A stretch of 64,000 bases of DNA from Rebecca billardiae RCC1528 (lineage: Eukaryota > Protista > Haptophyta). The stretch's first letter is position 1; each line of letters starts with the position of its first letter. This document shows, piece after piece, positions 3,031-49,220 of the stretch. Both the position numbers and the translations under genes were made by a program. The notes beneath the pieces were generated by a model. That model did not search any database. It was given only the letters and a program-made list of their open reading frames with translations, and was not told where the DNA came from. The stretch lies in contig OZ251235.1 of the NCBI GenBank assembly GCA_965240325.2, forward strand, positions 248,001 to 312,000. The letters run 5' to 3'.

Positions 3031-3171
3031 GGCTGTTCGGCACGGCCGTGTCGATCAGACGCGGGCCACCGCCATGTGTGTCGTCAACCCGCCTTGATGA
3101 CCGGCCGCGAATCGGCGTCCGGTGTCTCTCGATCCTTCTGTGGCCGTGCGGGCGTCGCCGATTACGCCGCA

Positions 3172-5534: not shown

Positions 5535-6396
5535 CGGATAGGTGTGCGCGCCCCTGAGCATGGCTTGGAGGTTCCACTGGGCAGCGCTCGCACACTCCTC
5601 CGCAACCTCACACACCTCGCGAACATCGGGGCGGATGTCCACGCGTCGCGCGCGAGACAGCACGGCCACCGGCGCGGACAGACGACAGTGCTCATCACTT
5701 CATCAGTCTCATCATGTCGGATCAAGTCGGACCGACGACCGTGTCCGTGTCCGTGACGGCGTCCCACGGCCACCGTCACAGACAGGGCCGACGGATGCAT
5801 CAGCACTCGAAGTTCATGACTCGAATGCTGCCAGTAAAAGCCGACGACACTTAATAGTATGGGTGCGCAGATCTTCGTACTCAAGATGCGCGCGTTGGCA
5901 CAGCTGATTCAGCTGCGAACGACTCTGACCAGATCCGGCTCGGCGCTCACTCCGTGCGACTCGCCAGTCGCAGTCGCGGCAGCTCTGTGAGCTCACCGTG
6001 CCGTCACTCGTCATCATGGCAGTCTCCGCGCGGCTTCTCACGGCAAAGTCACTGCATATGACGCCCGCCCATCCGCGACGAAGACGTGAGACGGAAGGAG
6101 GCCGCAACAGAACGCGTCCTAGCTGCCCGAAGGCGACGTGGCTGCGACTCCTGGACCAGGCACCACCAGCCAAGCTGGCCCACGGCCAGGAATCAGCCAG
6201 CCAGCCGGCAGGCAGCGGCGCGCGCTCCGTGCACCTGCCAGCTGCTCGCCCGTCGCAGCAGAGAGCGCGCACAGGGGCGAGGTCTGCTGGCCATGGCGGG
6301 GCTGGTAGCGGAGACGTGGAGTTCCGCGTCGGCATTAGCCGCCTGCGCTGCCCTGCGCGCGCGGTGGACGGCGCGCACCACCGCCACCCGTGCCGC

Positions 6397-6714
6397 TCAG
6401 CTGCTGTAGTAGGCGGCTTCGAACAGCAGCTGCTTTGTGCGGCACTCTTCTGGTTTTAGCGTGTTCCACGCGAGGCAGTCGGCGTACGTCCTGAACTCAC
6501 GCGGCGCCTTCTTCTCGATCTCTAGCAGCGTCGCGTGGACGCACGCCTGCACCTCCTTGCCCTCCTCGATGCACTTGGACGGGTGCGGCGTCGAGTCCTT
6601 GCACTTGTAGAACGCAAGGTTTTGGTCAAAGCAACGGTCGCCGATGACCTTCGCTGCGGCGTAGAGCTCGTGTGATTTGGGGGGCGCCTCGGCGCTGTAG
6701 CTCCGTGGGGACAT
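6397..6714 (-). CDS. NDUFA8: NADH:ubiquinone oxidoreductase subunit A8 (19 kDa, CX9C family)
   Basis: LYAAAKVIGDRCFDQNLAFYKCK...PSKCIEEGKEVQAC...FRTYADCL...CRTKQLLFE; CX9C cysteine spacing. Confidence 0.85.
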   Translation of the reverse strand: MSPRSYSAEAPPKSHELYAAAKVIGDRCFDQNLAFYKCKDSTPHPSKCIEEGKEVQACVHATLLEIEKKAPREFRTYADCLAWNTLKPEECRTKQLLFEAAYYSS

Positions 6715-6920
6715 CGCCGCAGCCTAGCCCGTGCACCACCGCCTCGCGCCGCCACGGCCGGTGCGCCCGTGGCCCGAGATCGCCTCGGCCTGGCTGGGCG
6801 ATCCTTCGTTCGGCGAACCACGATGGGCGCTCGCAAGCTTGCGAGAGCGTCCGGCTTGCAAAAACTCGCGTGCCTCCGCTTCGCCGGACTCGCGTGGGCG
6901 CCCGCTTGCCGCCGCCGGCG

Positions 6921-9900
6921 ATGAAGGGCAGCATGGCCAAGGCCCTCGTGGCGGCGCTCGCCGCGCTGCTGCCCGCAGCGCACGCGCTCTTCGAGGATCA
7001 GGCGGGTGTGGTGGACTGGTGCGCGCGCGCGCGCACGCGCGCGCCCCCGGCCACTCGCGCGCCCTCGCCCTGGCTCACACACGCGCGTCTGCCCGCATTG
7101 CCGCGCAACACTCGCGCCTGCGCGCAGGTTCCGTGCCAACATCGGCACCGTGCTCCACGCGGACTTTCACACAGTCGAGTCGCGCCGGCTGCTCCTCGTG
7201 AGCACCGACGCGTCGATTGTCGCCGCTGTTGACGCCGCGACCAACCAGACGGCCTGGCGCCACGTGCTGCCGGGCGGCGAGCGCGTTGTGAGCCAGGTGC
7301 TGCACACGCGCGCCGGCCAGCTGCTCGTCGGATCGGTGACGCCCGAGGGCGCGCTGATGGCGCGGCTCTGGACGGTGGGCGGCGCGCTCCTCTGGGACGC
7401 CCACGTGCCCGCGCCCCCGCCGTCGGCGGCCGTGCACAAGCCCACCGCCTCGTTTGTCGGCGACTCGGCGGATGTGCTCGCGCTGTGCGGCGCGCGCGTG
7501 CACGTGCTGCGCGGGCGCTCGGGCGAGCTGGTGTGGAGCTGGGAGCACGCGCCCGCGACGACGGGTGGGTCTGTGATCACATGGCAGGCCTCCTCCCTCT
7601 CCGCCGACCAGCGCACCCTCGCCATCCACGGGCTCGCGACCGGCGCGCGCGATGAGGCGCGCGGCCCGTCGCAGCTCGCGCGGGCGGACCTTGAAGTCAC
7701 GAACGGGGCGCTGGTCGGCGGTGTGAAGCTGGTGGCGGCGGGCGGCGGGATCGACGCGGAGCAGGGCCTGCTGCTCACGCTCGAGCCGCGCTTCGCCGTC
7801 GCTGTCTCCAAGGCCGGCGATCGCCTCCTCTTCGCCGCCGCGCCGGACGACGGCTCGGCGACCGCAGGCGCCGCCTCGAGCTTTGCGGTGCCGCACTCAC
7901 GCCAGGGCGGCGGCGACGGGCGCGCGCGGCTGCTGCCGGTGGCGCTGCCGGGCGCGGTGGTCGTCGCGCCGTCGCCGGCGCAGCACGTCCTCCTCGACCT
8001 CTCGCAGGCCGCGCCCGAGCCGCACGTCGCGTGGGAGCGCACGTGGAGCGCGCCGGGCGCGTGCGGGGGCCTGCGCAGCGGCGCGCAGGCGATACTCGCG
8101 TGCGCCGCGCCGAGTGCCTCCGGCGATGCGCTCGAGCAGGCGACGATGCTCGTGACGGCGGGGAGCGTGGAGAGCCTTCCCAGCCCACCCGCCGCGCGCG
8201 TCGACTTCGCGAGCCACGGCGCCCCCGCCGCGCTCTTCCTCGGCTCGTACGCCAAGCGCGACAGCGCGATCGCGCAGCGCGCGCTGCTCGTGAGCGCGAC
8301 AGGCGCCGCGCACTACGCGGTGGACGGCGCGTGCGCGTGGACGCGCGACGAGGCGCTGGCGCACGTCGAGCAGCTCGAGTTCGTGGACCTGCCGCGCGTG
8401 CGCGACGTGGCCGCGCTCGAGCAGGGCCCGCAGTACGGCTCGCTCTTCCGCGCCCTCGGCAGCCTCGCCGGCGGCGGCGCGGCCGCGCTCGCGGCCGCGT
8501 CTGGCCTGGGCGCGCGCCGCCACTCTCCCGAGCTCACCTCCGACGCTTTTGGCTTCAACAAGCTGATGGTCGTGCGCACGCGCTCGTCCAAGATCGTCGC
8601 GCTGAGCTCGCTCGACGGCTCGCCCGTGTGGGGCACGCTGCCCACGCTCGACGGCGCGCCGGTCACCGTGCACACGCTCACCGTCGTGCCCGCGCCCACG
8701 AGCCAGCCCACAGACATTGCGCTCGTCGTGAGCGCTCGCGGTGCCGACGGCGCCGACGAGCGCTATGCGCTCATCACCATCGACGCGCTCAAGGGCGAGC
8801 AGCGCGGCGATGCGCACCCGCTGCCGCAGCGCGTGCTCTGGACGATCTCCGTCGGCACGCCCGACGCCGCCGCGCCCGGCGCGCCGCCCCTCCCCCTCCT
8901 GGCGCTCGTGCACGCCGACTTCTCCGTCTCGCTCTTCCCGGAAACTTCCGAGGCGGCGCGCGCGTTTGAGGCGTCGGCGCGCGGCGCGATGCACTTCTTC
9001 CTGCTCGACCGCGCGGAGGGGGTGATCAAGGGGTACGGGCTCGCGGCGCGGCGCGAGGGCGGCGGCGCGGCGTTCGCCGCCGTGCACCGCTGGTCCTTTG
9101 CCCCGCCGCCCAACGCGCGCGGGCTGAGCGTCTGCACGCTCGACTCGGCCGAGGCGGTGCACTCGCCCGTGCGCGTGCTCGGCGACCGCGGCGTGCTGCA
9201 CAAGTACCTCAACCCCAACCTGCTCGCGGTGGGGTACACGCAGACGGGGCGGGGCGGCGCGGCGGGCTCGAGCTCGGAGCTCAGCGTCCACGTCACCGTG
9301 CTGGACGGCGTGAGCGGCGCCGCCGTGCACGACTTTGTCACCCCGCGCGCCGCGGGCCCCCTCCGGCTCGCGCTCTCGGAGAACACGCTCGTCGCGTACG
9401 CGCGCTCGGCCGCGACGGGCGCGCCGTTCGTCTCGGTCACCGAGCTGTACGAGAACGCGACCGCGCCCAACTACATGCGCATGCTCCTCTCCGGTGCGCG
9501 CCCGCCCCGCGCGCACACCGGCGCGCCTACCCGAGGCGTGCTCGCCCGCACCGCGGCCGAGCGGCGCGCCATCGCACAATCCGCGCCCTCCGCCCTCGGC
9601 CCTCCGCCCTCGGCGTGCGCTGCGCTGCGCTGCGCTGCTGCGCGCAGGCTCAGACCCGGACGCAGAGTCTGCGCGCTCCGCGTTCGAGCCGCGCGCGCCC
9701 TTCGCGCTCTCGGCCGCGTACTACCTGCCCGCGGACGTGGCGGCGGTGGGCATCACGCAGACCACCAAGGGCATCACGCCGCGCCACGTCATGTTCGCGC
9801 TCCACAGCGGACAGCTGCTGGCCCTGGTGAGCGCGCGCGCGCAACCCGCCGCACGCGCTCGGCCGCACGAGCGCGCGCGCGCCTGTGGTGCCGCCGCCGA

Positions 9901-10363
9901 GCCGACCGGTCGGCCCAGCGCGGCGCACCCGAGCCGTAACCGCGCCCGCGCTCACCTCCGCGCGCGCCTCCGCCGCCCCTCCCTCGCGCCGCAGGACAAG
10001 CGCATCTTCGACCCGCGCCGGCCCAAGGCCCCGCCCTCGCAGGCGGACAAGGAGGAGGGGCTGATGCAGTACTCGCCCTCGGTCGGCCACCCGCCGCCCA
10101 CCGCGCTCGTCACGCACGGGCACGAGGTGGCCAACGTGAAGGGCATGCGCTTCGCGCCGACCGTGCTCGAGTCGACCAGCGTCGTCGCGCTGTACGGCAC
10201 CGACCTCTTCGTCGCGCGCTACTGCCCCGCCAAGGAGTTCGACAAGCTCGGAGACTCGTTCAACCACGTCGCGCTCGTCGGCGCGCTCGTCGGGCTGGGC
10301 GCGGCGACGGTGCTGAGCACGTTCGCGCGGCGGCGGAAGGAAGTGAACCGGTTGTGGCGCTAA
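6921..10363 (+). CDS. EMC1: ER membrane protein complex subunit 1; introns 7019-7127, 9494-9647, 9827-9994
   Basis: Signal peptide then ALFEDQAGVVDW. C-terminal EMC1 motifs VHSPVRVLGDRGVLHKYLNPN, TQTTKGIT, DPRRP...EEGLMQY, LESTS...GTDLF...KEFDKL, a TM helix and NRLWR. Divergent from NDUFA8 across about 200 bp. Confidence 0.95.
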
Positions 10364-10872
10364 TCGGCCGGGGAGTGCGTGGTGGCGACGGCGCCCCGGC
10401 CGCATGCGCCGTGCCGCCTCGGCGCGCGCGCCCCCAACCCTCAACGCAGACGCAGCCTGTGTGCTGATGAAAGTGCTGCGCCGTGACGGACGCACGGATG
10501 TCTGAGTCAGGGGCGAGGCAGCGGCCGACGTTGATGACTTGATCTGACACGCCGTGCCAGGCGGCAGTTCATCACGTCCTTACGACGACCCTTGCGCGGA
10601 CCCTTCAACGGTCATCAGTAGACTGACAGTAGAGTCGACAGTCGGCAAGTAGGGTCTGCTGCGCGCCTGGCAAGAAGATGATCGTCGTCATGATATGGCA
10701 TATCATCATCATCATGATGCGCACTCGATCGTAGTCGTCGTATCATCATCATCGTCGTATCCGTAATTATGGCCATGCAGCGATGATAGGCATAGCCCGC
10801 CGCCGATATATGACAGATATCGACAGTCAGATCGACTATACCGAGCTATATCGTCTTAATATCTAGCTGCGC

Positions 10873-10873
<1 letters not shown>

Positions 10874-10906
<33 letters not shown>

Positions 10907-11010
10907 GCTAGAGAGCAGAGTCAGAGAGAGAGCAGAGCAGAGAGAGAGCGCCGAGTCGGGCTGCGCCGAGACTCAGTCTACGGAGCGAGAGAGAGAGAGA
11001 GAGACGAGCA
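10874..11010. repeat. (GA)n microsatellite region
   Basis: Directly visible GA runs. Confidence 0.85.
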
Positions 11011-11171
11011 GAGTTAAGGGCCTAGCTACTGCTATAGTATTATTTGCCGCCGCGTTAGGGTACAGTACGCCGGCGGCGTTAGACTTGGAGTGTGACTGAG
11101 AGTAAATACGGTAATTTAATACGGAGATCATCATGACTTGGTAGTCATCTGGCCGCGCAGGGGACCCCTCA

Positions 11172-14100
11172 TCAACTGGCGTCCGCTTTGACCGGCTTGC
11201 GAAAAGTCACCTCGTACAGCCGCTCAACCGGCTTGGCCTCCGTGTCTGCGAGGTTGATGATTTCGTTGTACTGCATACGCGCGCGCGCGCACACGGTGCG
11301 GGCGGCTACAGGCGTGAGCAGCGCATGCGCACGCGCGCGCGACGCGGCGCGAGACTCCGGCGCGCACCTTTGCCTTGAGCTTCTTGGTGGCGAAGAGCGC
11401 GAACTCCTTGGCGTCCTCAACCCAGCGCTCGATCAATGGGGCGAGAATGCCATTCGCGTCATCGCGCCAGTCGAAGTATCCCTCTGCGTCGGCGCGGCGG
11501 GTGCGGGCATGCGCGCACGGTCAGCGCACCCCGCCAGCTTAGCTGCGCGCACGACCGCCGAGGCCGTCGCGCGCGCGGGCGAGGGCGCACGCACCTGCGT
11601 AGCTGTAGATGGCTTCCCACAGCTCGGGCATCTCGTCGGCGAGCACGGCGCCGCGACTGCGCTGCAGCGACACCGCCTTCTCGAGCTGCTCCCTGAACGT
11701 CTTGAGCGCTGCCTTCTCCTCCTTCACCCACGCGCGCATCGCGGCCACGTCGCGCAGCATCTGCTCGCGCTGGTCGATGCCCGCGCGCATCACCTTGATG
11801 CGCGCCGCCTCGACGTCCGTGCGGAGCTTGGTCGGGCGCGGGACGTGCGAGCCAGCCCTGCCGCCGCGCGAGCGCAGGATCGCCAGGACCACCTTCCCCT
11901 CGTCCGTCCCGTCGCGCAGCGCGTCGTCGTACGCCGTGTTGCCGAACGCGTCCTCGAGGTTGACGTCGATGCCCTCGACGTCGACGAGGAACTGCAGGCA
12001 GTTCACGTTGCGCGAGGCGGCGGCGAGGTGGATGGGCGCGCGGCCGAACTCGTCCTGCTGGTTCACCGAGCAGGCGAACGTGATGATCCGCTTGAGGTTC
12101 TGCACGTCGCTCTCCGTCGCCGCAGCGTTCACGTGCCGCGCGATGTCGAACTCGCCGAGCTTGGCGCCGTGCTTGACGAGCAGCGCGCACGCCTCGTCCT
12201 GGTGGCCGAGTAGAGCGTCCTGCAGCGGGGTCGCGCCGCGGAGGTCGCGGCTGTTCACATCAGCTCTGTTCTCGATGAGCAGCGCCAAGTTTTCCGTGCG
12301 GCCCTCCGCCGCCGCCACGTGCGTCGCCGAGCGCTTCTCGAGCGTGCCCGCGTTCACGTTGCCGCCGAACGAGCAGAAGCGCTGCAGCACCGCCGTGCCG
12401 CCCGGCACGGCGCCGGCCGCGCACATCTCCTCGGACACGTTGCGCGTGCCGTGGAGGCCGCCGTGGCTCGCGAGCAGCGCGGCGGTCTCGAAGTGGTCGG
12501 ACAGCAGCGCGTCGTCGAGCGCGGTGTGCCCGATCTTGTCCTCGGCGTTCACGTCCGCGCGCGCGGCGAGCAGTAGCTCGATCAGCTTCTTGTGCCCGCC
12601 GCACGCGGCGAGCTGCAGCGGGCGTCGGCCGTGCGAGTCGGCGTGGTCGACGTCCATCGAACGTGCAGAGATCAGCCGGCGAACCTTCTCGAACTCGCCC
12701 TTGACGCACGCCATGCAGACCTTTGCATGCATCTGCTCATCGCGCTTGGCCTTGGCGTTGGCGAGCGTCTGCGTCGCGGCGGCGCGCAAGCGCGCGAGGG
12801 GCGTGGGGCGGGACTCGGCTCAGCTCTGGGCACGCGCGGGGCCCGCAAAGTAGCGACGCCGGCGCACCGCCGGCATCCGGCGCACCTGCTGCAGCGAGAT
12901 GATGTCGCTGGCCCCACCACCACTCGCTTCCGACGCGGAGCGGCCATCCTGCGAGGGGGCGCTCTCGCTGCTCGCATCAATGGAGGTCGAGCCGCCCGAG
13001 CCCGAGCCCGCGCTGTGGCTGCTGTGCTGGCTGTGCGTGCCGGAGGAGGCCGAGGCCTTGGAGCGGCCAGAGCGCGCAGAGCCCATGGCTGCGCAATAGG
13101 GTCACGCGATGGCGCGCGAGGGCGCCGCAGGCGCGTGCAGTCAGCCGTGATGCCAGCCGCGCCGCACGCGTGCGGGCGCAGCGCGCGTACTCAGGCCTTC
13201 GTACTGGCGCACGGCGTTGTCCATGAGCAGATCCTCCTGCGACGGGAACGACTTGAGCAGCTCGCGGTACAGCTCCTGGTTGAGAACAAACGTGGTCGCC
13301 TTGTCGTTGCGGCTGACGCGCGCCGTCTTGAAGTGGCGGATGCCAAAGATGAACGCGACCTCGCCGAGGAACTCGCCCGGCCCGACCGATGCGTTCTTGT
13401 CGTCGCTCTGCTCGGCGTCGTCCCCATCGCTCATGTCCACGCTGCCCGTGGCGAGCAGGATCAGCTCCTTGCACTGGTCACCCGCGCGGAAGATGACCGT
13501 CTCCGCCTCGATCTCGCGCTCGGTGAGCACGGCCGAGAGCCGGTCGATGAAGCCCTCGTCGCAGCCCTTCAGTAGCGTGGTGTCCGCCATGAGCTTCCGG
13601 TTGGTGCACGCTGAGACCTCCATCTGGATCGGCACGGGCAGCCCCGAGTAGATCTGCTCCGAGTCGATGTTGGAGAAGGAGGCGTGCTGCATCTTGTCGA
13701 TAAAGAACTTGGTCATCCGCTCCTTGAGTTCGGCCGGCACGTTCACGTGGCGCACGTACGCGTGCACGAGCTCGAGGTGTGCGCGCTTGCCCACGATCTC
13801 GTCGTCCATCTTCATCACCATGCCCGAGATGCCGCCAACGCAGTACGCGTCTGCGGCGCGCAGGCAGCGCGCGGGCGCCAGGCGTGGGCGCGGGGGCCGT
13901 GCCGTGAGCACTCGCGCGCTCGCGATCGAGGCGGCGGTCCGCTCGCGGCGCGCGAGGCGCGCACAGATTGTCATGTTGATCACGCAGAAGAAGACGAACA
14001 TGGAGAACTCGACGAAGTTGGCCGGGAGCTGCACGACGCCGAGCGCGGAGACGAGCGAGAGGATGAAGAAGACCGCGGTGACGTAGTGATCCATCAGCCG

Positions 14101-17100
14101 CTCCTCCGCCGACATCAAGACGCTGAGCCCGTCGTCGCCGCCCACGGCGATGCGCTGCCTCAGGTAGTAGGTCGCCCACGTGTTGTCCCAGCGGCTCAGC
14201 GCCACCTGCGAGAAGCCGAGCACGTTCCAGATGCCCGCGCCGAAGTGGATGATCAGGATGAGCGGCAGCGCGTTCTTGAGCAGCCCCTTGCCCATCTCGC
14301 GCTCGGTGAGCCCCGCCTTCCACACCTTGAACGCGCCGAGCAGGTAGCGCGCGTTGAGCATGCGCAGGTGGCGCACGCCGAACCGGATCATCGGGTCGAC
14401 GCCGAGCGCCCAAAGCACCTGGTCGTGCGGCCAGCACGCGAACGCGTCGAGCGCAAAGTCGTTCGAGAGGTAGTGCGCGGCCACCTCGGCGGGCGCGAAC
14501 ACCTCGACCGACTTGTCGTTGATGAACGTCGTGTTGAAGCGCAGCAGAATGCGCAGCATGTAGAGCACGTCGCACACGAGGTTGACGTACGGCACCCAGC
14601 GCATCAGCACCACCTCCTCGAAGAAGCACAGCTGCATCGGCACGGTGAGCACGTCCCACAGCACGGTGATGTAAAAGAGCCACACGCTCAGCTTGTTCAT
14701 ACGAGAGTGGACCGAGACGATGTACCACGGCCACACCGTCGTCGTGCTCGCGCCGTTCTCGACGCCCGCCTCGGCAGATACGATCTCGCGCGAGCCAATG
14801 TGGATGTCCAACTTCTCGAGCAGCTGCACGACGCCCTTCTTCTGCGAGCGCTTCGAGCCGGTGAGCGGGTCGACGCCGCCCGCCGCGCGGATCGTCGCGA
14901 CGCGCTCGCGCAGCTTGGCCACCAGCTTCTCCCACGTGATCTTCCGCTGCTCCGCCTCCTCCGCCTCGAGCTCGGCCGCGCTGAGCAGCAGCGAGCGCGT
15001 GACCGCGCCGTTGTGCTCGGTGCCGTCGTCCTCCTCGGCGTGCGTGTCGCCCTCCGTGCCCGCGGCGCCCTCCTCGGCGGCCACCACCGGCTCGCCCTGC
15101 TGCGGGAGGCTGAGCTCGAGCTCCTCCTCCACCCAGCTGCGGACGTGCGCCGCCGTCGTCTCGACAGGGATGGCGACGGCGTGCTTGACCGCGCCCAGCA
15201 GCGTGGCCGCGTCCACCGGCTCCGCCTCGCCCAGCCGGCCGACGTCGATGCGCAGCTGCAGGTTGTCCGCGAGCAGCGCGCACGCGGTCGCGCTGCTGAG
15301 CGCCGTCTTGAGCTCGGCGACGATGGACGCCTCGACCGCGGCGACGCGCACCGCCTCCGCCCTGGCCGCCTTGGCCTTGGCCTGCGCCGCCTTGGACATG
15401 AGCTTGACACCCGCCGTGCCCAGCTCGTCCGCCCTCTGCAGCTTTGGGATGAAGACACCAGACGAGTTGTCCGCGATGCCCATGGCGCTCGCGCCCGCGC
15501 CCGCGTCCTCCGAGGCGGCCAGCAGGATCCACGAGGAGACGCCGATGAAGAACTGCGACTCGGACATGGACTGCGCCGGCCGCGTGCTCCTCCCCTTGGC
15601 GCGCAGCTGCAGCACCTGGTTGCCGCCCGAGTAGATCGCGCGAGCCTGCGCGCCGCTCGGCGGCGCGGAGCCTGACGGCGCCTCTGCTCGCGGCGCCTGC
15701 TGCACCTCGGCGGTGGTGGACTCGACGACCGCGGTAGAGACGGCCTGCTCTGCCGCCTCCTCCACGCTCAATCCGGCCGTCTCCCTCGCCGCATCGGGGC
15801 CCTCCTCCTGCGCCGGCGCCGACGCGTCCGCGCCCGCCGCGGCCAAGTCGGCGAGCGCCTGCGCTGGCGCCACGTTGGGCCGCTTCGGGTCATCATCGGC
15901 AGTGGCGGGAGCGTGGGTAGCGGCGATGGCGGAGACGACGGCGGCGGTCCCGCCGTAGCCGCCGTCAGCAGCGGCAACTGCAGCATCGCCTCCGCTGTCG
16001 GCGGTGCCGTCGTCCGCGTCGGCGGCGACTGCAGCGAGGAGGCGCTCGAGCTCCTCGTCGACGGCGCTGCCCTCGGCGGCCTGGCCGACGACAAGCGTGG
16101 TGCGTCGCGAGCCGGTGCGCCCTGACTCGGCCGTGCGCGAGTTCCGGCGCCGCCCACCCGCCACGACGCCGCCCAGCTCGGCCTCGCCCTGCTCGGGGTC
16201 TACCGTGAGCTCCTCCGGCGGCGCGGTCAGGTTGCGCGACGCCGCCATCAGGTAGCTGAGCAGCGACTTGATCTCCTCCGAGCCGAACTCGCCCAGCTCG
16301 CCCTGCAGCTTGCGCACGTCGCGCATCCGGATCTCGCCGCTGTGCGACGCGTCGAAGACGCGGAAGAGCCGCGTGATGACGAAGCACGCCTCCTCGATGG
16401 CGAGGGTCCCACCCGCCTCGGCCGCGCCGTCCGGAGCGGCGCCCGAGCCGCGCGGAGAGCCTTCGCTGGCTCTCGTCGCCTCGCCCTTGGCCACCGCGCC
16501 GCTGTCGCGCTCGTCGGCGTTGAAGCTCGCGCGAAGCCGGCTGGTGATGCCGCTGAGCCGGCTCTTGCGCTTGGGCGAGCCGGTCTCATCCTCCTCGGCC
16601 GCCTCGGCCGAGTCGCCCTTCTTGTGCGCGCTCCGCGGCGCCGTGCCGGCCAGCTCGGGGGCCTCGAGCGCGGCTGCCGCCTTGGTCAAGAGCGCCTTGT
16701 TCTTCCGCCGCCGCATGGCGTAGCGCTCGTCGAGGATGTCGATGAAGCGGCGCGAGCAGAAGAGCGTCACGTGGCCGAGGTCGGAGAGGTAGAAGGGGCC
16801 GTCGCCGCCGTCCGCATCCCCCAGCATGCCGTACGCCGGCTGCGCGCCCAGCTCTGCGCTCGCCTTCGCCTCGTTGATCTGCTTCGAGAGCTCGATCAGC
16901 ACCGAGCCAGTCTTCGAGCCGCGGCGCAGCGTGTCCTTGAATGAGCCGTCGCCCTTGGGCTTGGCGGCCTCGCTGAGCGAGTTCCGCCGGCCGTACAGCG
17001 AGCTGCTGCCAGGCGCTCGCTGCTGCGCGAGCTGCTCCATCCTGTCCGCGGCCGCCATCTCCGCGCCCGCCGCGCTCCTGGGCGACATCGGCGCCGACGG

Positions 17101-20100
17101 GCCGAGGATCGACTGCAGCTCCGTGTACACGTCGTCGAGCACCTCGCCCACGCGCTCCGAGTCGAGCTCGAACACGTCCTGCAGCATCGCGCGCAGCTGC
17201 GAGTCCTCCTGCGCGCACCGCTCGGCGGCGTTGAGGTGCGCGTAGCGGTGCGCGGGGAGCACGGTGGCGAAGCGGTCGCGGATCTCGATGAGGCCGGCCT
17301 CGGCGGAGGGCAGCTGCAGCACCAGCTTGATGAACTGCTTCGACGCGCCACGCGAGTCGTGCTGGTCGAACGAGCCGTGCTGCTCGGTCAGAGCGCCGCC
17401 CGCTGCCTGCGCGCCGCCGCCGTCGTCGCTGTCATCGTCATCCTGGTGGTCATCGTCGGGGTCAGAGTCGGTGTCCGAGTCGAGCTCCTCGCCGTACTCG
17501 TTGATCCAGAGGTCGGCCCACTTGCCCATCGTGCGGAAGGTGTTGCGCTGCGAGCGATGCAGGTGGCTCAGGTCGGAGGCGAGCTTCATCAGCGACATCT
17601 CGACCTCGCGCGCCTTGTCGACCATCCCGAGCGCATGGTGCTCGTGCAGCTCGGCGAGCTTCGCCACGCTGCGGGTGACCTCGTACAGGTTGAGGCTCCG
17701 AGCCTTGCGCAGCTTGGCCTGGATCCGCGCGTCGTCGGCCCACTGCTCTGGCACGGTCCCGCCCGCCGAGATGAGGATGCTCGCGATCTTGAGGTCGACG
17801 TCGAGCGCGTCCATCAGCGGCGGGCGCGACCACCGGTCAGCGCAGTTCACGTCCGCCATCGCCTTCACGAGCAGGTACACGCTCGAGATCGAGCCGGACA
17901 TGACGGCGAAGTGGAGCGGGGTGCGCCCGTCGTAGTCGGGCAGGTCGACCTTCGCGCCCACCGTGAACAGGAAGCGCAGCCGCTCCACGTCGCCCCGCGT
18001 CGCCGCCTGCCGCACCATGTTGGCGATGTGCTCGCCCTCGGGCCGAGCGGACGCGCGCACGAGCAGCGCCGCGACCATCTCGTGCTGGAGGAGGATGGCG
18101 TCGTCGAGCGCCGAGCGGCCGTGTCGATCGCGCACGTGGACGTCGCACATGTTCGCGATCAGGTACTCGGCAACGCGCACGTTGCCCTCGGTCGCAGCGA
18201 CGTGCAGCGCGGTGCGGCCGTCGTAGTTCTTCGAGTCGAGCGCGATGCCGTGCTCGACCAGCATAGTCATCAGCGGCATGTCGCCCTGCTTGGCCGCCTG
18301 GTGCGTCCACGCGTGCGGCAGGTCGAGCTCGAGCTGCGCACCCGCCTTGACCAGCGCGTCCGCCACCGCCGAGTGCTTGCCCTTCATCGCGTTCTCGAAT
18401 GGCGACGCGCCGAAGCGGTCCTTCGCGGCCGTGTTGGCGCCGAGCTCGCACAGCAGCTTGACGACGGTGGCGTGGCCCTCGACGCACGCGAGGTGGAGTG
18501 GGGTGCGCTTGTCGTGCGAGACGGCCTGGATGTCGAAGCCGCGCGCGATGAGACCCTTGACCGTCTCAACATCGCCCTGCCGCACTGCGATCGCCATCTG
18601 CGAGAACAGCTCCTCGTTGCGGTCGAGGATGGCCGTGCGGATCGTGTTGCGCAGCGCCTCGTACTCGCGCTTCTCGTCCTCGTCCATCTGCTCGGCAAAG
18701 CCGCCGGTCGCGAGGTCGGCGCCCTGCTTGTCGAGGCCGTACTTGCGCAGCACGTTCTGCAGGATGAGGTCGGTCTGCTCGGGGTACTGCGCGATGATTT
18801 GCAGGAACGTCGTCGCGGTGAGCACGCTGAGCGTCACCTCGCCCTTGGAGGACGCGATCGCCGTGTACGGGTGCGGCAGGCCGATGAAGAAGGCGACCTC
18901 GCCCACCACCTGGCCTGGGCCCAGCTCGGAGCGGACGGTGGCGACGAGCGTATCGCCCCGCCAGACGTGCAGCGTGCCGCCCACGCACCAGAGCAGCTCG
19001 GCCGCGCCGTCGCCGCGCTTGAAGACCACCTCGCTCGGCTGTGGGCGGCGGCGGCGGCGGCGGTGGCGCCGGCGGCAACGGGGGGTGGCAGTGCAACGCG
19101 GGTGGCGGGGCCGGCAGGGGCGGCGCCGAGCCGTGAGGAGGCGACCCGCGCCGTGCGCGCGCGCGCGGCGAGAGGTGATCACTGCACGGCGCGTCGCGCG
19201 CGTCACGTCGCGCGCGCACCATCATGTACCGCTCACGCAGGTACATCGTGACGTAGGTGAGGAACTGGTGGTTGCACGACCAGAAGACCCACGTCTGCTC
19301 CATCTGCCGCATGTGCTGCGAGGACGCGACCTCGACGCGCAGCGAGAGCGGCATCTGGCTGTTGATCAGGTCGGAGCCCGCGGCGAGCTTGCGGTGCTGG
19401 AACTGGAAGTGCCCGCGGATGCGCATGGCGAGCTCCTTGGGCAGCTTGCGCTCGGTGACGTAGTCGTCCACCGCCTTCATCAGCTCGTTGTAGTGCACGG
19501 TGCTCTGGTCGGTGCGCACGAGGTACTGGAAGAGCGTGCCGAGCACGTACGCGTAGAAGACCATCTGTACCGCCGCGACGAAGGCGGCGAAGAGCACCTC
19601 GAGCTTCTTGGTGAGGATGATCGTGCCGTACCCCATCGACGTGAGCCCCATCCACGCCATGTACAGGCTGAAGAGGTACTTCTCCGCAAGCGTCGCATCT
19701 GCTGGGTCCAGGTCCGCGTTCTCCGTGAGCAGCGGCACCTGAGCGGGCCACGAGGGCAGCTCAAGCGGCCGATTGGACCAGGGGCCGCCGAGGCCCCACC
19801 AGATGCACGCGATCTGCGCAACGGCGCCGCGCGCGCGCGCCGCCGCGTGTCGGCGTGGCGCGTGAGCCCGCGTGAGCAGACGCGAGCGGGCGAGGGTCAC
19901 TTGCTCCGCGCGCGGTTCGCCGTGCGCGCCGCCGCGACTCGCTGGCTCGTGGGCGCACGCAAGATAAGAGCGCGCGCGCGCCGCGCCGCGCGCGCACCCA
20001 GTGGGGGACGGAGATGATGACGATGGAGAACTTGTAGGTGGCGAGGAACTTAACGTTGACGGTCAGATCGGTGTTGATCTCCTGCACGTACATGATGAGC

Positions 20101-20891
20101 TCGCGTACGCGCAACGAGCGGAGGAGCTGGACGATCGCCCACAGCCAGTCGGTGCCGGTCAGGATGAACACGGCGCGCGCGATGTGCAGCGCGAGGCTCG
20201 TGCCGATGTCGCGCGCGGCGTCCTTGGCGGTGTAGAGGCTGTGCCCGCTCGAGTCGTCATCGATGCTGCTGCTCGCCGCCTCAAGCAGCTTCTGCTTCTC
20301 CTCACCCGTCGGCTGCTCCATGATCGTCTTGCAGATCCAGCACAGCTCGAAGAGGTCGCCCAGCACGTCGATCACGATCGCGACGCCGCTGTGCGCGAGC
20401 TCGTACGGGAAGGCGAGGCGGAGCGGGATCATGAGCTCCTCGATCGTAAAGATAGGCACGCGCGCCAACCTCGCGATCGCCTTGAAACGGTCGCGCCTCT
20501 CGCGCTCCTCCGTTGCGATTTGCTGGCGCGCGCGCTCGGCGTCGAGCGTCGCCTCCTCGCCCGCCAGCACCGGGCGCCACGTCACGCGGTGGTCGACGGG
20601 CTTCCGCCGGCCATGGTCGTGACTGGGCTTGAGGATGCCCTTGATGACCTTGGCTTCCTTCGTCCGGCCCTTCTTGAGATCACCCGCCTCCTCCTCCTCC
20701 GAGTCCTCCTCAGTGCGCCCGAGGGCGCGGTCAAAGAGCTTGCGAGCGCGCGCGCCGGCGCCCAGCGCCGCGGCCGCGAAGCGGCCGCGGGCCGCGTCGC
20801 GTGGGGAGGCGTCGTTGCCGCCAGCGCTCGTCACCGATGTCTCGTCGGCGTCCGCTGCGGTCTCGTCGTTCAGGGGCGTCACCTTGCCCAT
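11172..20891 (-). CDS. Tandem two-module cation channel, ~2937 aa: [6TM-pore, CNBD, ankyrin]-linker with EF-hand-like motif-[6TM-pore, CNBD, ankyrin]. Exons 20891-19998, 19813-19220, 19038-13965, 13850-13191, 13088-12886, 12768-11595, 11483-11368, 11270-11172
   Basis: Seven GT-AG introns give a continuous 8814-nt frame. Module 1: S4 LLRSLRVRE, S5 PHW|IACIWW, pore LTSMGYGTI, CNBD VVGEVAFF, ankyrins (DYDGRTPLH). Module 2: S2-S3 FNTTF...HYL...FALD, S4 RHLRMLNAR, pore VSALGVVQLP, CNBD FLGEVAFIFG, ankyrins (DLRGATPLQDA). Confidence 0.88.
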
Positions 20892-21632: not shown

Positions 21633-22082
21633 CGAAGCCGGAGCCAGTTCAATTCGCATCCTCGATTTCACTTGTCAAGCTACATAGTGAGTCAGACTAG
21701 TGGGCACCCGAATCCTCGGTCGGAGTCGGTGACTCCGTTGGCCGAACACTCGTCGAGTCGCGGGTAAGTTTTAGTTTAACTACTACGCTTCTACTACCCG
21801 CACGTACCGGCGGAGGCACGACCGCCTACTGGCACTATCTCGGCCAGCAGTTCGGAGCCCCGGCCACTAAACCCTGGGTTTGGGACTGCCGACGCATCCA
21901 TCCGTCATCATGTGACAGCCTCAGTCCGCTCGCCCTCCGCCCGCTCCGACGACGGACGAGCAGTCCGGGGCCGGTCTGCAGCCGCAGGCCTTAGCCCCGC
22001 GCCTGGTCGCTTTTTATGGCGGTGGACCCGTATCGCCCATACGCGCGGTATAGGGAGCACCGCCCACGCTTCTTCTTCAGTC

Positions 22083-22085
<3 letters not shown>

Positions 22086-22147
<62 letters not shown>
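22086..22147. repeat. Compound (CA)n(TA)n microsatellite
   Basis: Directly visible. Confidence 0.95.
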
Positions 22148-22833
22148 GTCTAGCCGTCCTCGCGAACGCCGACGCCAACTGCTGGCCGAAGGTGGGCACG
22201 CCGCCTGGCATGTCGATGCCGAGGCGGCTGCCTGTGTTCCTACTCAGTGGGATTTACGTGTCCTCATGCAAAGGCGAGCGGCAGCAGATGCGGTGGGCAT
22301 GCCGCTCGCCGTCGACGAGACGCGGTGCGTGAGAGATCCCGTTTCATGGTGTGTTGGGGAGCACCGCGTGACGCGATGTTGGTCGGTGCACGCGACGCGC
22401 CACCCGCGTGCGAGCCGCAGCCGCCGGCGACGCAGGACGCGACATGGCTGGATGCCCGCGCCACGGCTGCAGAGCCCGAGAAGCCGATGATGGCGATCGG
22501 AGATCTTTGGCCGGTAACAGAAAATGCCGGACGGACTGTTTGTCCGGGAGCAGCTCGTTGAGGCCATGGTCCGGTAGAGGGCGATGGAGCTGATGAGCGG
22601 CGCTTGCGCCTGGCGTCCGTGTCGTCCTCTTAGACAATCAGTTATTGTACCAATAACCCCACATATAGCTTCACGTACTGTCACGCAGCGGCGCTGTAAA
22701 GTCTCTCGTCAGTACTACTGACTAAGCGCGCTGTTATTCATTCACCGCTGCCGCGGCGCAACGCCGTCGCGCCACGTATTGCCCACCTCGTGCTGAGGCC
22801 GTGCGACGCGCCTGCTCTCGCCTTCCGGCCGCG

Positions 22834-24243
22834 TCACAACTCCTTCTTGGCGCGCACCCGGCGCACGCCCGCGCCGTCCATACGCGGCACGAGCAGCCAC
22901 AGTGTCACGTCACTCAGCCGGTGGCCGAGCAGCTCGCGCGCGTTGGCGACGAAGCCGAGCGCGTTGTCGGGCGGGCGGAAGTGCTTCACCGTCTCAAGGT
23001 ACGTCACGCCCCGCGCGAGGTTGCGCAGCTGCACGAACGTGAGCATGCCGGTGAAGGCGAGCACGGGCAGCGAGATGTCGACGAGCGCAATCGCGCACAC
23101 ACCCGCCAGCCCGTCGCCCTCTGCGTAGTACTGGGGGTGGTGCATGAGCAGCAGGAAGGAGGTGGGGAAGAAGAGGGTCATGAGCAGCGCGGCCTGCTCG
23201 ATCGGAATCGTCGGCGCTGCACCCGCACCGCCGTCAAGCTGCCTGTGGGCGTGCGCGCCGTGCCCGTGCCCGTGGCCGTGCTGCACCTCCCCGCGCAGCC
23301 GCAGCCCGGGCGCGCCCATCAGCTGCATCGGCTGCAGCAGCCTGCCGAGGGCGACGCGCGTCTGCGGCGCGACGTACGCGAGCACGTGGTCGTGCAGGTA
23401 CGCGTCGTTCCGCCCGATCCGCGCGTGCAGCGCGTGCAGGCACATCACGAGGATGTACACCGTCGCCAGCAGCATGTAGAGCACGAAGAGCAGGAAGTGG
23501 CGGTGGTTGGCGGCGCCGATGCACGCGTTGAAGAACATGCAGTGGTGGTCCATGCGCAGCACGCAGCGGCGGCACGTGCGGCAGTGGTGCGAGCGCGGCG
23601 GCGCGATGGGCGGGTGGCCCAGCCGCGCGCACTCCGCGCAGTAGTACCACCCGTCGAGCGGGCGGACGCTCGGCCCGCCCGCGGGCACCAGACCTCCGCC
23701 CGATCCCGCGGTGCCCGTGGCCGCGGACGCGCCATCGCCGTGCGCGTGGCCGCCGTGCCCGAGCTCCTCGGCACCGGGCGCGCTGCCGTTCGCCCCGCGC
23801 GTCGTCTCGATGCGCTCCGCGAGCAGCGTGCTCACCGTCGGCGCGTGGTCCTCGCCGTTGTAATTCTGGCGCGCGGTGAGCATCCCAAACGCAAAGTGCA
23901 GCACGACATTCGCCGTGAGCAGCAGCGAGAAGCACAGGTGGAAGACGGCCCAGGCCGACCACTCGCCGATCGGGCGGTCGAATGGGATAAAGTACCGCGG
24001 CAGCAGCACGCCGAACCCCGCGACGAGCACGAGCGCGATCAGCAGGAGCGAGCCGAGCGCAATCAGCCAGCCATTGCGCGAGAGCGTGCGGCAGCAAGGC
24101 CGGAAGCAGCAGCCGGTGAACTGCGCGTTGACGAGCGTGTCCTGGCCATTGAGCGCGCCGCACGTGGTGCACCCTCCGCGCGCCCACGGGAATGGGGCGG
24201 CACACGCCCAGCACACGCCCTCGCGCGGTGGCCCGAAGCGCAT
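22834..24243 (-). CDS. DHHC-type protein S-acyltransferase with N-terminal CxxC...CxxC motif (plant PAT11-like layout)
   Basis: CAEC...[36 protein letters not shown], four TM segments, TYLE (TTxE motif), N-terminal CWAC...CTTC. First ATG at 24243; the track start at 24285 is GTG. Confidence 0.92.
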
Positions 24244-25155
24244 GCCGAGCGCTGTGGCAGCAGGGCCGTGGCGACCCCGATCCACCTGCCGCTGCCAGTG
24301 CAGCGCGAATCAGCGATCAATGCCTGCTTATTCAATGCGATGTCACAGAAACTAGAAAGCATGGCGGCCCGTCGTGACCGTCGTCACTCGTCCAGGCCTT
24401 GCTCTCGATTCCAATGATAGAATCGTGCCCGCCTTCCTCGTCCTCGCCTGTTGCGCGCCGGGTAGCAGCGGCACACACACTATTCTAACTCACGTGGCGC
24501 GCGCGACTCGGCTGTCTGGCGTGTTCACTCCGCTGTCCCCGTGGCGCGCCGAGCTGCTGCAGCAGTATGTCACAGCGCCGCGCGCCAACTGGAGCCTGCG
24601 CATGTGACCGGCCAGTCTTCACGCTCTGGAGCTCATGCGCGTTCACTCTGAAATAGCCTCCAATATTGGCAGCGAATGCGATCTGGCGCCGCCGCCACTA
24701 TCGCGGGCAATCGTGATGATGACTCCGCGCCCTCGGGAGTGACGGTCCGAGTTGGGGACCGCGCCGCCGCGCCTGACAGTCTTGTCTCTAGTGACTGTCT
24801 TGAGTCCGAGTTCTCGAGAAAGTTAAGCCTGTTCACGTTGGTGGTGACTGCTTCAGACTACTGGCGGTCTGGCCGGGCGGCCGATTACACGACTCTCAGA
24901 GTCACGTGCGCACGCAGGCTGTGAGTCAGTGAGTAGTAGTGACCGGTCACGGTGTAGTCGCGTCGACGCCAGCCGCGAATCATCGATGATGATGATCTAT
25001 CATCGATGCGGATTGCGGTCGCGCAGAGCTTCATGCGAATACATTCTTGAAAGCGTGCGCTTCTCGTGTGCGTGACGGTGAGTCGGAGACAGGAGTGCAG
25101 CCGCGCTGGGCGGCGCTGGCTCATGCAGCAGTCACCGCCGCCACCGCGCAGAGCC

Positions 25156-28100: not shown

Positions 28101-29373
28101 CAGGCGTGCAGCCGAGCCGCGTCCACCGTCTCGGCCGAGAGCTCTCCGAACGCGCTGCTCATCGCGGCGGCCGCGGCCGCGGCGCTGTCGACGCCCGGCA
28201 GCGCGGCGGGCGCGGGCGCGAGCTGCGCGATGGCCGCGGCCGCGCGCGCCGCCTCCTCCCGCACCGAGATGTCTGCAGAGGCGCTCAGCGCGCTCAGCGC
28301 CACGAGCGCGCCCTCCTGCGCGGCGCGGTGCGCGGTGCGCGGGGCGGCGCGGCGCGCGGCGGGACGTGCACTCAGCCGGCGAGTCATCTCCGCGCGCGCC
28401 CGCCCGCGGGGGCCGAGACGTGCCATGCGCGCCGCAGCCGTGCGCGCGTGCGCGTGCGGCCCCGCCCGTCGCGAGCCCGCGAGCGCGCGCGCACCTGCGC
28501 GACCAGGGGGCGGATCTCGGGGTCTGCGGCGAGCTGGGTGATGGTCGACGCGGCCTCACGCTGCACGCCCACCGACTCGGACTTGAGCAGGCGCACGAGC
28601 TTGCCGATGCCGCCCTGCTCCACGAGCGAGCGGCGCACGCGCGCGTCCTCGACAATCCAGTTGAGGGCGAGCGCGGTCAGCATCTGCGTCTGCGTGTCGG
28701 TGGCGTCGAGGAGGTCGAGGAGGGCGGGCACGCCGCCCTCGTGCACGATGCGCGCGCGGATGTGCTGGTCCGCCGCGAGCTGGCGCAGCCCCAGCGCCGC
28801 CTCGCGCTGCACGCTCGCAGAGCCCGTGTTGAGCAGCTCCATCATCGCCGGCACCGCGCCCTCCGCCGCGATCAGCGTGCGGATGTGCTCGTCGCCGGCG
28901 AGCCACGAGAGCGCGGCGGCGGAGAGGCGCTGCACGGCGGGGTCGGGCGACTTGAGGCAGGAGACGAGCACGGTGACGGAGCCCTCGGGCACGGTCTCCT
29001 TGGCCAGCTGGCTCAGCGGCAGCGCGCTGTGCGGCTGCGGCGGCTGCTCGGCGTGTGGCGCGCGCAGCTGCTGCTCGTGCGGCGGCTCAAGCTGGCGAGA
29101 GCGCATGGGAGCGTGCGCGGGCGACGGCGCCAGCCCCTCGTGCGCGCGTGGCGGCAGGTGCTCCTGCTGCTGCGCGGCAGCGCTGGTGGCGCCGTGCGCG
29201 TCGCCGCGATTGGTCAGCATCGCGACGAGTTCGCCCACCGACTGCACGGCCGGCTGGTGCGGCTGCGAGAGGCTCTGCGTGAGCCATTGGAGGGCCTGCG
29301 GCAGCGAAGGCCGCACGCGACCCCACTCGATCGCCGGCGAGCCCTCCTGCGCGGGCGGGCCGGGCCGGTGCAT
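25156..29373 (-). CDS. Armadillo-repeat + BTB/POZ protein (ARIA/ABAP1-like); exons ~29373-28495, 28315-27986, 27800-26109, 25914-25156
   Basis: Repeated EGG(V/I)xxLVxLL...VQR.AA.AL.WLA ARM units. C-terminal BTB ADCTLVLGAERIPVHWFVLYSQSEYWKAMF..GMQEA...FLYTG. All introns are GT-AG phase 0. Start codon uncertain. Confidence 0.85.
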
Positions 29374-29562
29374 CGCGCGACGATGCTCCACGGCCGTGCA
29401 GTGCAGCGCGTGCAAGCGGTGCGCGCTCAACGAATCCTGAGCGCGAATGAGAGTCCTGGGCCAAAAGAGCGCAGCTGTCGGACTAGCCCTTGACGAAACG
29501 CCACAGTGTGTGCAGCGTGCGTGCAGTCAGTCGCCTTTGGTCCTTCCACGTTGCCGTCCACG

Positions 29563-31920: not shown

Positions 31921-32845
31921 GAATAATGTACTATGTAGCAGTCGTAGCCGCCGCCATTTGTCGCGTCGTAGGTTACTCGGTGCATGTCCGGTGACGATCA
32001 CTACTCATCACTGCTACTCACTGTGACGATGACGATGCCGGCAACCAGTGAACCGCACTCCGCAGCCGGCGAGTCTCCGCGAAACTGTCACTGTCAGCCC
32101 GACAGTCAGTGGCGGGGGCCCACTCGGGCGCGCGGCGCCGGCGGGAATGAGGCGGGCCCCCAGTACTGAGTCCGGTGCCGGTGTCCAGCGGGGCGGGGGC
32201 GCGGGGCCCCGCTCGCGATCCAGCGACCAGAGTCTTTGATGACTGCTTTGAGTTTGAGGCTCTACTATAATACTACTCGTCCGCCGCGGTCGGGTCGAAT
32301 GGCGCGAAGCGCTGCTTGAGCTCGTCCGTCTCGCGCGCCTCGAGCTGCTGCACGCTCAAGCCGACAAGCGGCCTGTCCGACAAGCCGTCGCTGCGAATAT
32401 AATGTAGCAGTCGTAGCCGCCGCCATTTGTCGTCGCGTCGTAGGTTACTCGGTGCATGTCCGGTGACGATCACTACTCATCACTACTCACTGTGACGATG
32501 ACGATGCCGGCAACCAGTGAACCGCACTCCGCAGAGCCGGCGAGTCTCCGCGAAACTGTCACTGTCAGCCCGACTTATAGTTATTGGCGGGCCGGCCCAC
32601 TGGCAGCGCGCGGCGCCGGGAATGAGGCGGGCCCCCAGTACTGAGTCCGGTGCCGGTGTCCAGCGGGGCGGGGGCGCGGGGCCCCGCTCGCGATCCAGCG
32701 ACCAGAGTCTTTGATGACTGCTTTGAGTTTGAGGCTCTACTATAATACTACTCGTCCGCCGCGGTCGGGTCGAATGGCGCGAAGCGCTGCTTGAGCTCGT
32801 CCGTCTCGCGCGCCTCGAGCTGCTGCACGCTCAAGCCGTCGCTGC
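31921..32845. repeat. Tandem duplication (~470-bp unit) covering the CWF19L1 C-terminal codons and 3' flank
   Basis: 31921-32394 is near-identical to 32395-32845 with small indels; both copies encode SVQQLEARETDELKQRFAPFDPTAADE* on the minus strand. Confidence 0.92.
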
Positions 32846-48976: not shown

Positions 48977-49220
48977 GGCGCACGTCCTCGGCGCGACCGG
49001 TGAGCGAGGGAAATAAAGCCAGTCTCGAAACCGATTGGTGAGTCGTAGCAAAGTCGTAGCTTGGGCAAAAGGCGCGGGTCTCGCTTTGTACTACTTCCCG
49101 GGTTCAGCCGTTCAGATGATGATCTCGTCAACTAGATCGTTAGGACGCTCGCTCGATACAATAAGCAACCGGATCCGTTGTGAACTGACGGCCGGAGCGG
49201 AGTCAGCGGACCGGAACGGG

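Follow-up and report, generated by a model that had tools for sequence, protein, structure and literature searches.

Concatenation of subunits, as in K2P, TPC, Nav/Cav and CNGK channels, is a recurring path to asymmetric pores. In TPC1 and TPC2, each chain carries two six-transmembrane (6TM) repeats, the channel is a dimer with non-identical filters, and plant TPC1 additionally bears EF-hands between its repeats. In this study, we analysed a stretch of 64,000 nucleotides (nt) from the haptophyte Rebecca billardiae RCC1528 (the window; contig OZ251235.1, positions 248,001 to 312,000) and a gene therein for a doubled channel, in which two modules, each of 6TM, pore, C-linker and cyclic-nucleotide-binding domain (CNBD) plus about 280 amino acids (aa) of ankyrin repeats (ANK), follow each other in one chain. 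The first two-repeat tandem CNBD channels were described from Prorocentrum, Aphanomyces and Phytophthora sequences (Pozdnyakov 2020, PMC7576140). Identity between their repeats does not exceed 30%, first and second repeats belong to distinct clades and TVGYG-like filters are present in both; no haptophyte tandem channel was reported there, and the word 'ankyrin' does not occur. For the plant channels GORK and SKOR, it was reported that the ankyrin blocks of neighbouring subunits dimerise, which changes the channel's four-fold symmetry (C4) into a two-fold one (C2) and holds the channel autoinhibited (PMC12742848). Full-text literature searches returned no other paper on two-repeat CNBD channels and none on an ankyrin-bearing form. 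An earlier note, made from the letters of the window alone, had called the doubled architecture unrecognised, which is not supported, since two-repeat tandem CNBD channels had already been described in silico and doubled CNBD-ankyrin proteins are present in databases. The tandem CNBD design is known in outline; what is new is the description of the ankyrin-bearing family. We propose, with a probability of about 0.7, that the window holds one intact nuclear gene for a two-module channel, the chains of which would assemble as an A-B-A-B pseudo-tetramer, where A and B denote the first and second repeat.

Exon structure and coding evidence

Introns were searched by inspecting junctions and by aligning relatives back to the window DNA, and the exon model was then assembled by script. 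The gene lies on the minus strand, spans 20891 to 11172 and has eight exons and seven introns, with a start ATG at 20891 that is preceded by an in-frame stop. The coding sequence of 8814 nt gives 2937 aa plus stop, exactly the length that the earlier note had estimated for eight exons in one frame.

11172..20891, minus: entire coding region of the two-module channel gene (splice model; colinear throughout with P0005 and P0001)
19998..20891, minus: exon 1, N-terminal cytosolic region and S1 to S5 (first part) of repeat A
19220..19813, minus: exon 2, repeat A from the remaining S5 through pore helix and filter to S6 and C-linker (SKOR/GORK at 5e-14 by phmmer against PDB; splice sites)
13965..19038, minus: exon 3 (5074 nt), CNBD-A, ANK-A, linker of about 1000 aa, S1 to mid-S6 of repeat B
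13850-13191, minus: exon 4
13088-12886, minus: exon 5
12768-11595, minus: exon 6
11483-11368, minus: exon 7
11270-11172, minus: exon 8

All seven introns (97-184 nt each, G+C 0.76-0.84) begin with GT and end with AG, the donor reading GTGCGCGC in four of the seven. Every splice in the model recreates residues that are present in relatives: the junction TI|YAYCVGG matches TIYAWCVGG and RYMM|PSEV matches RYMMPAET, and QYEGL|TMGSARSGRSK and YA|EGYFDW are likewise consistent with relatives. Before splicing, the raw open reading frame (ORF) at 13141-19206 on the minus strand comprises 2021 codons and opens with the last part of a CNBD, followed by an ankyrin block, some 1000 mostly low-complexity residues, a 6TM Ion_trans domain and then a second CNBD. 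ORFs upstream of it contain another membrane domain with the pore signature TSMGYGT, and an ORF downstream contains a second ankyrin block. Pfam, run on these unspliced pieces, found cNMP_binding twice, Ion_trans and two ankyrin blocks. The raw ORF reaches 2021 codons because intron 3 (13851-13964, 114 nt) is in frame and stop-free; if retained, this intron would lengthen S6 of repeat B by 38 residues.

As the G+C content of the window is 60-81%, coding potential was assessed separately from frame length: long open frames are common in high-GC DNA, and several on both strands are open here over 600-800 codons. The open frame of exon 3 is far beyond chance, the probability of 1691 codons staying open being 3e-15 at the exon's own base composition. 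G+C at the third codon position (GC3) amounts to 0.91-0.97 in each 300-codon block of the coding sequence, including the linker (aa 901-1800), with 0.35-0.58 at the second position, while the pooled introns display no codon periodicity (0.80/0.84/0.79). The continuous periodicity together with the open frame thus identifies the linker as translated sequence rather than as an intergenic spacer.

Relatives carry the same gene. The closest named protein is KFE25_007711 (P0001) of the pavlovophyte haptophyte Diacronema lutheri, and the window model is colinear end to end with P0001, P0005 and P0006 at 44%, 43% and 35% identity, respectively. At the D. lutheri locus (L001), a single open frame of 2682 codons at 5977-14022 starts ahead of S1 of repeat A and reaches the end of the repeat B CNBD. 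This locus corresponds to JAGTXO010000003.1, locus coordinates 5977-15476; annotated KFE25_007711 leaves out a portion of S5 and pore in repeat A as well as all of ANK-B, both of which are found in the genomic DNA, and the paralogue KFE25_012280 (P0007) also appears mis-modelled. The present annotations of the D. lutheri paralogues are incomplete. A tblastx comparison of the L001 flanks with the window gave low-complexity noise only and no synteny with the D. lutheri locus.

At the transcript level, the intron-less contig L005 (8395 nt) encodes a 2704-aa ORF (P0005) with an upstream in-frame stop and a 3' untranslated region, and the intron-less contig L004 (8108 nt) encodes a 2647-aa ORF (P0006), which is also present as an MMETSP transcript. 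Both contigs are nearly all ORF and hold the complete doubled layout. The genomic Logan contig L002 carries ANK-A, an intron, a linker frame of 1028 codons, a further intron and module B, and the transcript contig L003 has ANK-A, linker and module B on one molecule. The statement of the earlier note that the fusion is no splicing guess is therefore borne out by the uninterrupted exon, by the 2682-codon D. lutheri ORF and by the full-length transcript contigs of relatives. Its further statement that one exon of about 5 kb joins both transmembrane (TM) regions holds in part: exon 3 does join CNBD-A and ANK-A to TM-B, but TM-A lies in exons 1 and 2 and is connected via introns 1 and 2.

These data bear directly on a different gene layout, in which two adjacent genes, or mainly separate messages for A and for linker plus B from an internal promoter, would be present and the long frame would be incidental. 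The MMETSP ORF P0002, which is labelled 'complete', begins in the linker at the equivalent of about window position 17060, gene callers split both L002 and L003, and in L003 the frame shifts by one base from ANK-A to the linker (745-776, near 750). In L003 the first frame stops at 774-776 and an ATG at 764 starts the second, either by assembly error or as a real split. However, the stretch from ANK-A to S1-B is free of in-frame stops in the window as well as in D. lutheri, L005 and L004, coding periodicity is continuous across this region, the split in L002 coincides with GT-AG introns, and transcript contigs from two relatives are full-length. P0002 was considered as a B-only transcript and rejected, since P0004 of the same 90% cluster contains it and extends the same ORF by 204 residues upstream, which renders P0002 a fragment; at first sight, it had looked like a transcript starting within 14800-17500, the region that the earlier note had singled out. 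We therefore regard separate genes or messages as very improbable.

Two divergent modules, linker and tail

Within the single chain proposed here, both repeats show the same order of parts, with the following features.

19508..20474, minus: membrane domain of repeat A (aa 140-400; across intron 1; AlphaFold2 of the P0005 counterpart, Foldseek to GORK/SKOR/AKT1)
20085-20141, minus: S4 of repeat A, LLRSLRVRE
19622..19642, minus: selectivity filter of repeat A, TSMGYGT, a K+-channel signature (alignment of repeats)
18742..19507, minus: C-linker and CNBD of repeat A (aa 401-595; across intron 2; Pfam cNMP_binding)
18853-18903, minus: phosphate-binding cassette of repeat A, Tyr at the canonical Arg position (cassette comparison)
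17752..18609, minus: ankyrin block of repeat A (aa 640-925; Pfam Ank_2/Ank_4/Ank)
14752..17751, minus: inter-repeat linker (aa 926-1925), mostly low complexity, coding periodicity kept
17290-17343, 16738-16794, 16246-16377, 15520-15567 and 15232-15276, minus: five conserved linker islands
16246..16377, minus: EF-hand-like linker island, loop DASHSGEIRMRD (Pfam EF-hand_7 E=0.1, below threshold)
13813..14736, minus: membrane domain of repeat B (aa 1931-2200; across in-frame intron 3; Pfam Ion_trans, PDB phmmer to KCNH2/HCN1/GORK, AlphaFold2 of the P0005 counterpart)
14317-14388, minus: S4 of repeat B
14023..14049, minus: pore loop of repeat B, SALGVVQLP, lacking GYG and one residue shorter
13198..13812, minus: C-linker and CNBD of repeat B (aa 2201-2405; Pfam cNMP_binding, PDB phmmer)
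13315-13365, minus: phosphate-binding cassette of repeat B, ...RHFKTARV, Lys for the canonical Arg
11869..12741, minus: ankyrin block of repeat B (aa 2485-2775; Pfam)
11175..11796, minus: conserved helical C-terminal domain (aa 2800-2937; across introns 6 and 7), ending ...ERLYEVTFRKPVK

Modules A and B are 25% identical over 768 columns, and both belong to the superfamily of CNBD channels, which comprises HCN, CNG, KCNH and plant Shaker channels, with 6TM and a C-linker/CNBD after S6. In phmmer searches against PDB, the exon encoding pore and C-linker of repeat A hits SKOR/GORK (5e-14), and for repeat B the match is KCNH2 (3e-17). Ion_trans of Pfam matches repeat B of the window and two stretches of the orthologue P0005. 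AlphaFold2 was run with family alignments on both P0005 cores, which are 65% (A) and 58% (B) identical to the window modules, so that structural statements are those of the orthologue. The models, with a mean predicted local distance difference test (pLDDT) of 80 for A and 85 for B, display S1-S6, pore helix, C-linker and the CNBD beta-roll in both repeats. Foldseek aligned them to GORK, AKT1, HCN1 and CNGA over about 480 columns (E 1e-19 to 1e-22), with GORK, SKOR and AKT1 on top for repeat A (2e-19), and CNGA, GORK, AKT1 and HCN1 about level for repeat B (1e-21 to 1e-22). The label 'Shaker-like' of the earlier note thus applies in a loose sense only: repeat A is nearest to GORK/SKOR by both sequence and fold at about 20% identity, and repeat B is generically CNBD-type and has no GYG. 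Pfam scans at E<=0.1 to 1, covering the linker, aa 2732-2866 and P0005 and P0006 in full length, detected no KHA domain, which plant Shaker channels have at the C-terminus; for the final 71 aa of the window protein, the scans of these two orthologues stand in.

The two pore loops differ throughout the family. In the clade of the window, the repeat A filter reads T-[SA]-x-G-Y-G, with GYA in D. lutheri P0001, while GYG occurs in repeat B of no family member in the alignment of repeats; the B loop is SALG[VI]xQ[LV]P and one residue shorter in the same clade, with G-x-[VI]-G variants in other members. In the cassettes, repeat A ends in ...P-[YF]-[TS] and repeat B in ...RHF-[KRT]-[TN]-A-R. In canonical binders this position reads R-[ST]-A, a motif that 4-repeat and bacterial-like matches in the same alignment retain. 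The arginine that binds cyclic nucleotide monophosphates (cNMP), a feature of the CNBD superfamily, is hence absent from both repeats, as it is in plant Shaker and KCNH members. Since both CNBDs lack this phosphate-binding residue, they are probably coupling or regulatory modules, as in those channels, rather than cNMP sensors. In S4, repeat A carries three arginines, and repeat B four together with lysines; so few basic residues, counted as 3-4 per repeat, suggest weak or modest voltage dependence.

Such departures from the canonical pattern could also point to a doubled channel-like scaffold that would serve mainly as sensor or anchor and in which one repeat would not conduct, most likely B, given the non-GYG loop, or A, given the weak S1. 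This would agree with the shortened loop of repeat B, with the poorly hydrophobic S1 of repeat A, with two non-canonical CNBDs and with the large ankyrin and linker regions. However, both repeats keep a well-conserved S5, pore helix and S6 with confident folds (pLDDT 80 and 85), and conservation of SALG[VI]xQ[LV]P across species indicates selection on the pore, so that we consider a scaffold of this type improbable.

Between the two modules, the five islands of the cytosolic linker recur in the Pavlovales-type members P0001, P0004, P0005, P0006, P0010 and P0179. A Pfam scan of linker and tail returned no family besides the sub-threshold EF-hand, and in the relative P0181 the linker between the repeats contains significant EF-hands; Ca2+ input via the linker is therefore conceivable in some members. 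The C-terminal domain is conserved in the same six proteins and matches no Pfam family. A tail duplication, in which the region after ANK-A would resemble the tail after ANK-B, was dropped after BLAST gave nothing significant.

Family spread, origin and assembly

An exhaustive HMMER search with the repeat B core yielded 2007 proteins at E<=1e-3, and the matches listed were probed with segments of the window protein. Among them, the full order TM-A, CNBD-A, ANK-A, linker, TM-B, CNBD-B, ANK-B and C-terminal domain is found in more than 12 clusters at 50% identity. The search for the doubled architecture that the earlier note had proposed thus shows it to recur in haptophytes, Rhodelphis and green algae, under NCBI/UniRef labels such as 'hypothetical protein' or 'cyclic nucleotide-binding domain-containing protein'.

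P0005, P0006, P0010, P0179: full-layout members
P0031: full-layout member, second D. lutheri paralogue
P0007: third D. lutheri paralogue
P0035, P0036, P0039: full-layout members, Rhodelphis marinus
P0037: full-layout member, Cymbomonas tetramitiformis
P0054: full-layout member (partial), Bryopsis sp.
P0048/P0154 (MMETSP), P0074, P0181: full-layout members
P0088: full-layout member, Gymnodinium smaydae transcriptome

Maximum-likelihood trees of the S5-to-CNBD cores were calculated with 65 and then 77 rows, no plant sequences being among them. All first repeats form one clade (Shimodaira-Hasegawa approximate likelihood-ratio test, SH-aLRT, 99-100), all second repeats lie across the opposite side of the branch (94-95), and the repeats of the doubled family are together split from canonical CNG/CNGK-like channels (96). 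The branching order of Pavlovales-type, Rhodelphis and green-algal members is mirrored between the first- and second-repeat sets. Separate deep clades and mirrored branching argue for one old duplication and fusion followed by co-evolution of specialised halves, and we read the doubled family as one such fusion. Ankyrin-less two-repeat proteins, P0127 from a bicosoecid, P0094, P0086 and P0139 from Diphylleia, branch among canonical channels. The two repeats are sisters with support of 99 in P0127 as well as in P0094; those of P0086 pair in a join that is flagged as a possibly false meeting of long branches, and P0139 gave one repeat only. They have the look of recent duplications that arose independently.

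A-type repeats were seen only within tandem proteins among the matches listed, and a search for a stand-alone A-type channel with the single A module of P0005, limited by its word index, returned only the contig-limited fragment P0185 and the mis-modelled D. lutheri paralogue. For B-type repeats, P0093 and P0106 are apparently single-module relatives with ankyrins, while the 'single' entries P0003, P0012, P0017 and P0008 are gene-caller fragments or N-terminally incomplete, with contig evidence for P0003. As a separate observation, the P0107 cluster, P0098 and P0115 from ENA/JGI metagenome contigs are ankyrin-less 6TM-CNBD proteins of 465-640 aa nested in the repeat-B clade.

By analogy with all known concatenated P-loop channels, two chains would form a two-fold-symmetric A-B-A-B pseudo-tetramer, in which two GYG-type A loops would alternate with two non-GYG B loops in a shared pore. 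Such an alternation makes it unlikely that the pore holds a classical, strictly K+-selective filter. ANK-A and ANK-B may pair as a fixed heterodimer, by which the C2 arrangement of the GORK/SKOR type would become permanent. Going one step further, and only tentatively, since we rate it at somewhat less than even odds, the family could represent an ancient, separate two-repeat invention: an obligate C2 hetero-pore of the CNBD type with two GYG and two shorter non-GYG loops, a selectivity unlike that of K+ or CNG channels, a permanent ANK-A/ANK-B heterodimer of the GORK/SKOR switch and Ca2+ control via an EF-hand linker.

Several observations weigh against the proposed single gene and its A-B-A-B assembly. 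The frame shift in L003 and the linker start of P0002 have been described above, and the window locus itself is known from DNA alone, transcription being seen in relatives. S1 of repeat A has a conserved EE and is oddly polar and barely hydrophobic. In Rhodelphis and green-algal members, the filter of repeat A has degenerated to GNL, GYQ, GYD or GYI, and function may consequently differ across the family. Finally, a linker of about 1000 aa does not force the A-B-A-B arrangement, and the repeats could sit in different pores.

This last point leads to an assembly in which four chains would place their repeats in separate, tethered A4 and B4 pores, or in which chains would co-assemble with paralogous chains in other stoichiometries. 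Besides the linker length, each repeat has its own C-linker, CNBD and ankyrin stack, D. lutheri has at least three paralogues and, with P0093 and P0106, single-module B-type relatives apparently exist, so that B-type homotetramers may form. On the other hand, every characterised concatenated P-loop channel (K2P, TPC, CNGK, Nav/Cav) forms one pore, which is general knowledge and is also found in PMC7576140. The confinement of A-type repeats to tandem proteins among the listed matches and the co-divergence of A and B in mirrored trees argue in the same direction, and the drift of the A filter away from GYG in several lineages is hard to square with an independent K+ pore. Separate pores or mixed stoichiometries are thus rather unlikely.

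The A-B-A-B pseudo-tetramer would offer a natural heteromer of fixed stoichiometry for structural and electrophysiological study, and the family adds a conserved asymmetric pair of pore loops to the two-repeat CNBD channels, which are so far known as sequences only. The ankyrins on both halves tie it to the ANK-driven C4-to-C2 switch of GORK/SKOR. It is shared by haptophytes, Rhodelphis and green algae and is widespread in marine algae, where channels for motility, calcification and nutrient signalling are poorly known. If true, the ancient separate origin would render the family a living example of the one-to-two concatenation step within the CNBD branch.

Surroundings of the gene and comparison with known channels

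Outside the channel gene, high-GC3 ORFs of the window encode an ABC transporter ATPase (898-3054), a DHHC palmitoyltransferase (22837-24309), an armadillo-repeat protein (28387-29526), an Hsp70-like protein (29494-31551) and an EF-hand protein (47540-49090). An AG microsatellite (10874-10957) lies just downstream of the channel stop codon, a CA/TA dinucleotide run (22060-22150; THTHTH...IYIYIY in translation) upstream of the DHHC gene, and a tandem repeat of a 475-nt unit at 31933-32838 (95% matches, 1.9 copies) on the immediate 3' side of the Hsp70-like ORF. A direct repeat of 917 nt, 100% identical between 56092-57008 and 60118-61034 at a spacing of 4026 nt, may represent a long-terminal-repeat-like pair, a segmental duplication of recent date or an artefact of the assembly; each copy holds a 10-nt array (CCGCGCTGCT, about 28 copies), and the window from 56 to 62 kb shows strong negative GC skew. 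A tRNA scan of the window found none.

Compared with known systems, the channel shares with the tandem channels of PMC7576140 two 6TM-CNBD repeats per chain at no more than 30% identity (here 25%), separate repeat clades and a dimer as presumed functional unit. It differs in about 280 aa of ankyrins per repeat, in the linker of about 1000 aa with its islands, in the conserved C-terminal domain, in the family-wide lack of a GYG-type filter in repeat B, where those channels have TVGYG-like filters in both repeats, and in lineage, with haptophytes, Rhodelphis and green algae in place of members of the stramenopile-alveolate-Rhizaria (SAR) group; this distinction from dinoflagellate and oomycete tandem channels follows their description in PMC7576140. 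The two-repeat proteins without ankyrins, which come from a bicosoecid, Diphylleia and two Logan assemblies, branch elsewhere, and for P0127 and P0094, the two that are placed reliably, the sister position of each protein's own repeats points to independent origins.

The CNGK (tetraKCNG) channels of sperm likewise concatenate 6TM-CNBD repeats in one polypeptide to a pseudo-tetramer, but have four repeats instead of the two here, lack ankyrins and carry the canonical GYG and R-T-A motifs; the 4-repeat matches P0029, P0055, P0068 and P0091 form their own clade. With TPCs, the channel has in common two repeats, differing filters and an EF-hand-like linker island (real EF-hands in P0181), while TPCs have neither CNBD nor ankyrins and only a short linker, and the listed top matches of the sequence and fold searches against PDB are all CNBD channels, not TPCs. 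The resemblance to TPCs is an analogy of design, not membership.

In comparison, the plant channels GORK, SKOR and AKT1 display the same order of 6TM, C-linker, CNBD-homology domain and ankyrins, again with a CNBD that lacks the cNMP-binding arginine, and GORK/SKOR are the nearest channels to the GYG-bearing repeat A by sequence (5e-14) and fold (2e-19). Unlike the present channel, with two modules, about 20% identity to them and no KHA detected, these plant channels have one module per chain and are homotetramers, the plant Shaker family as a whole assembling four chains into homo- or heterotetramers. Of their T-x-G-Y-G-D filter, TSMGYGT of repeat A has the GYG but not the Asp, and SALGVVQLP stands at this position in repeat B. 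While the C2 state of GORK/SKOR is reversible (PMC12742848), the two-fold symmetry would here be encoded in the chain itself.

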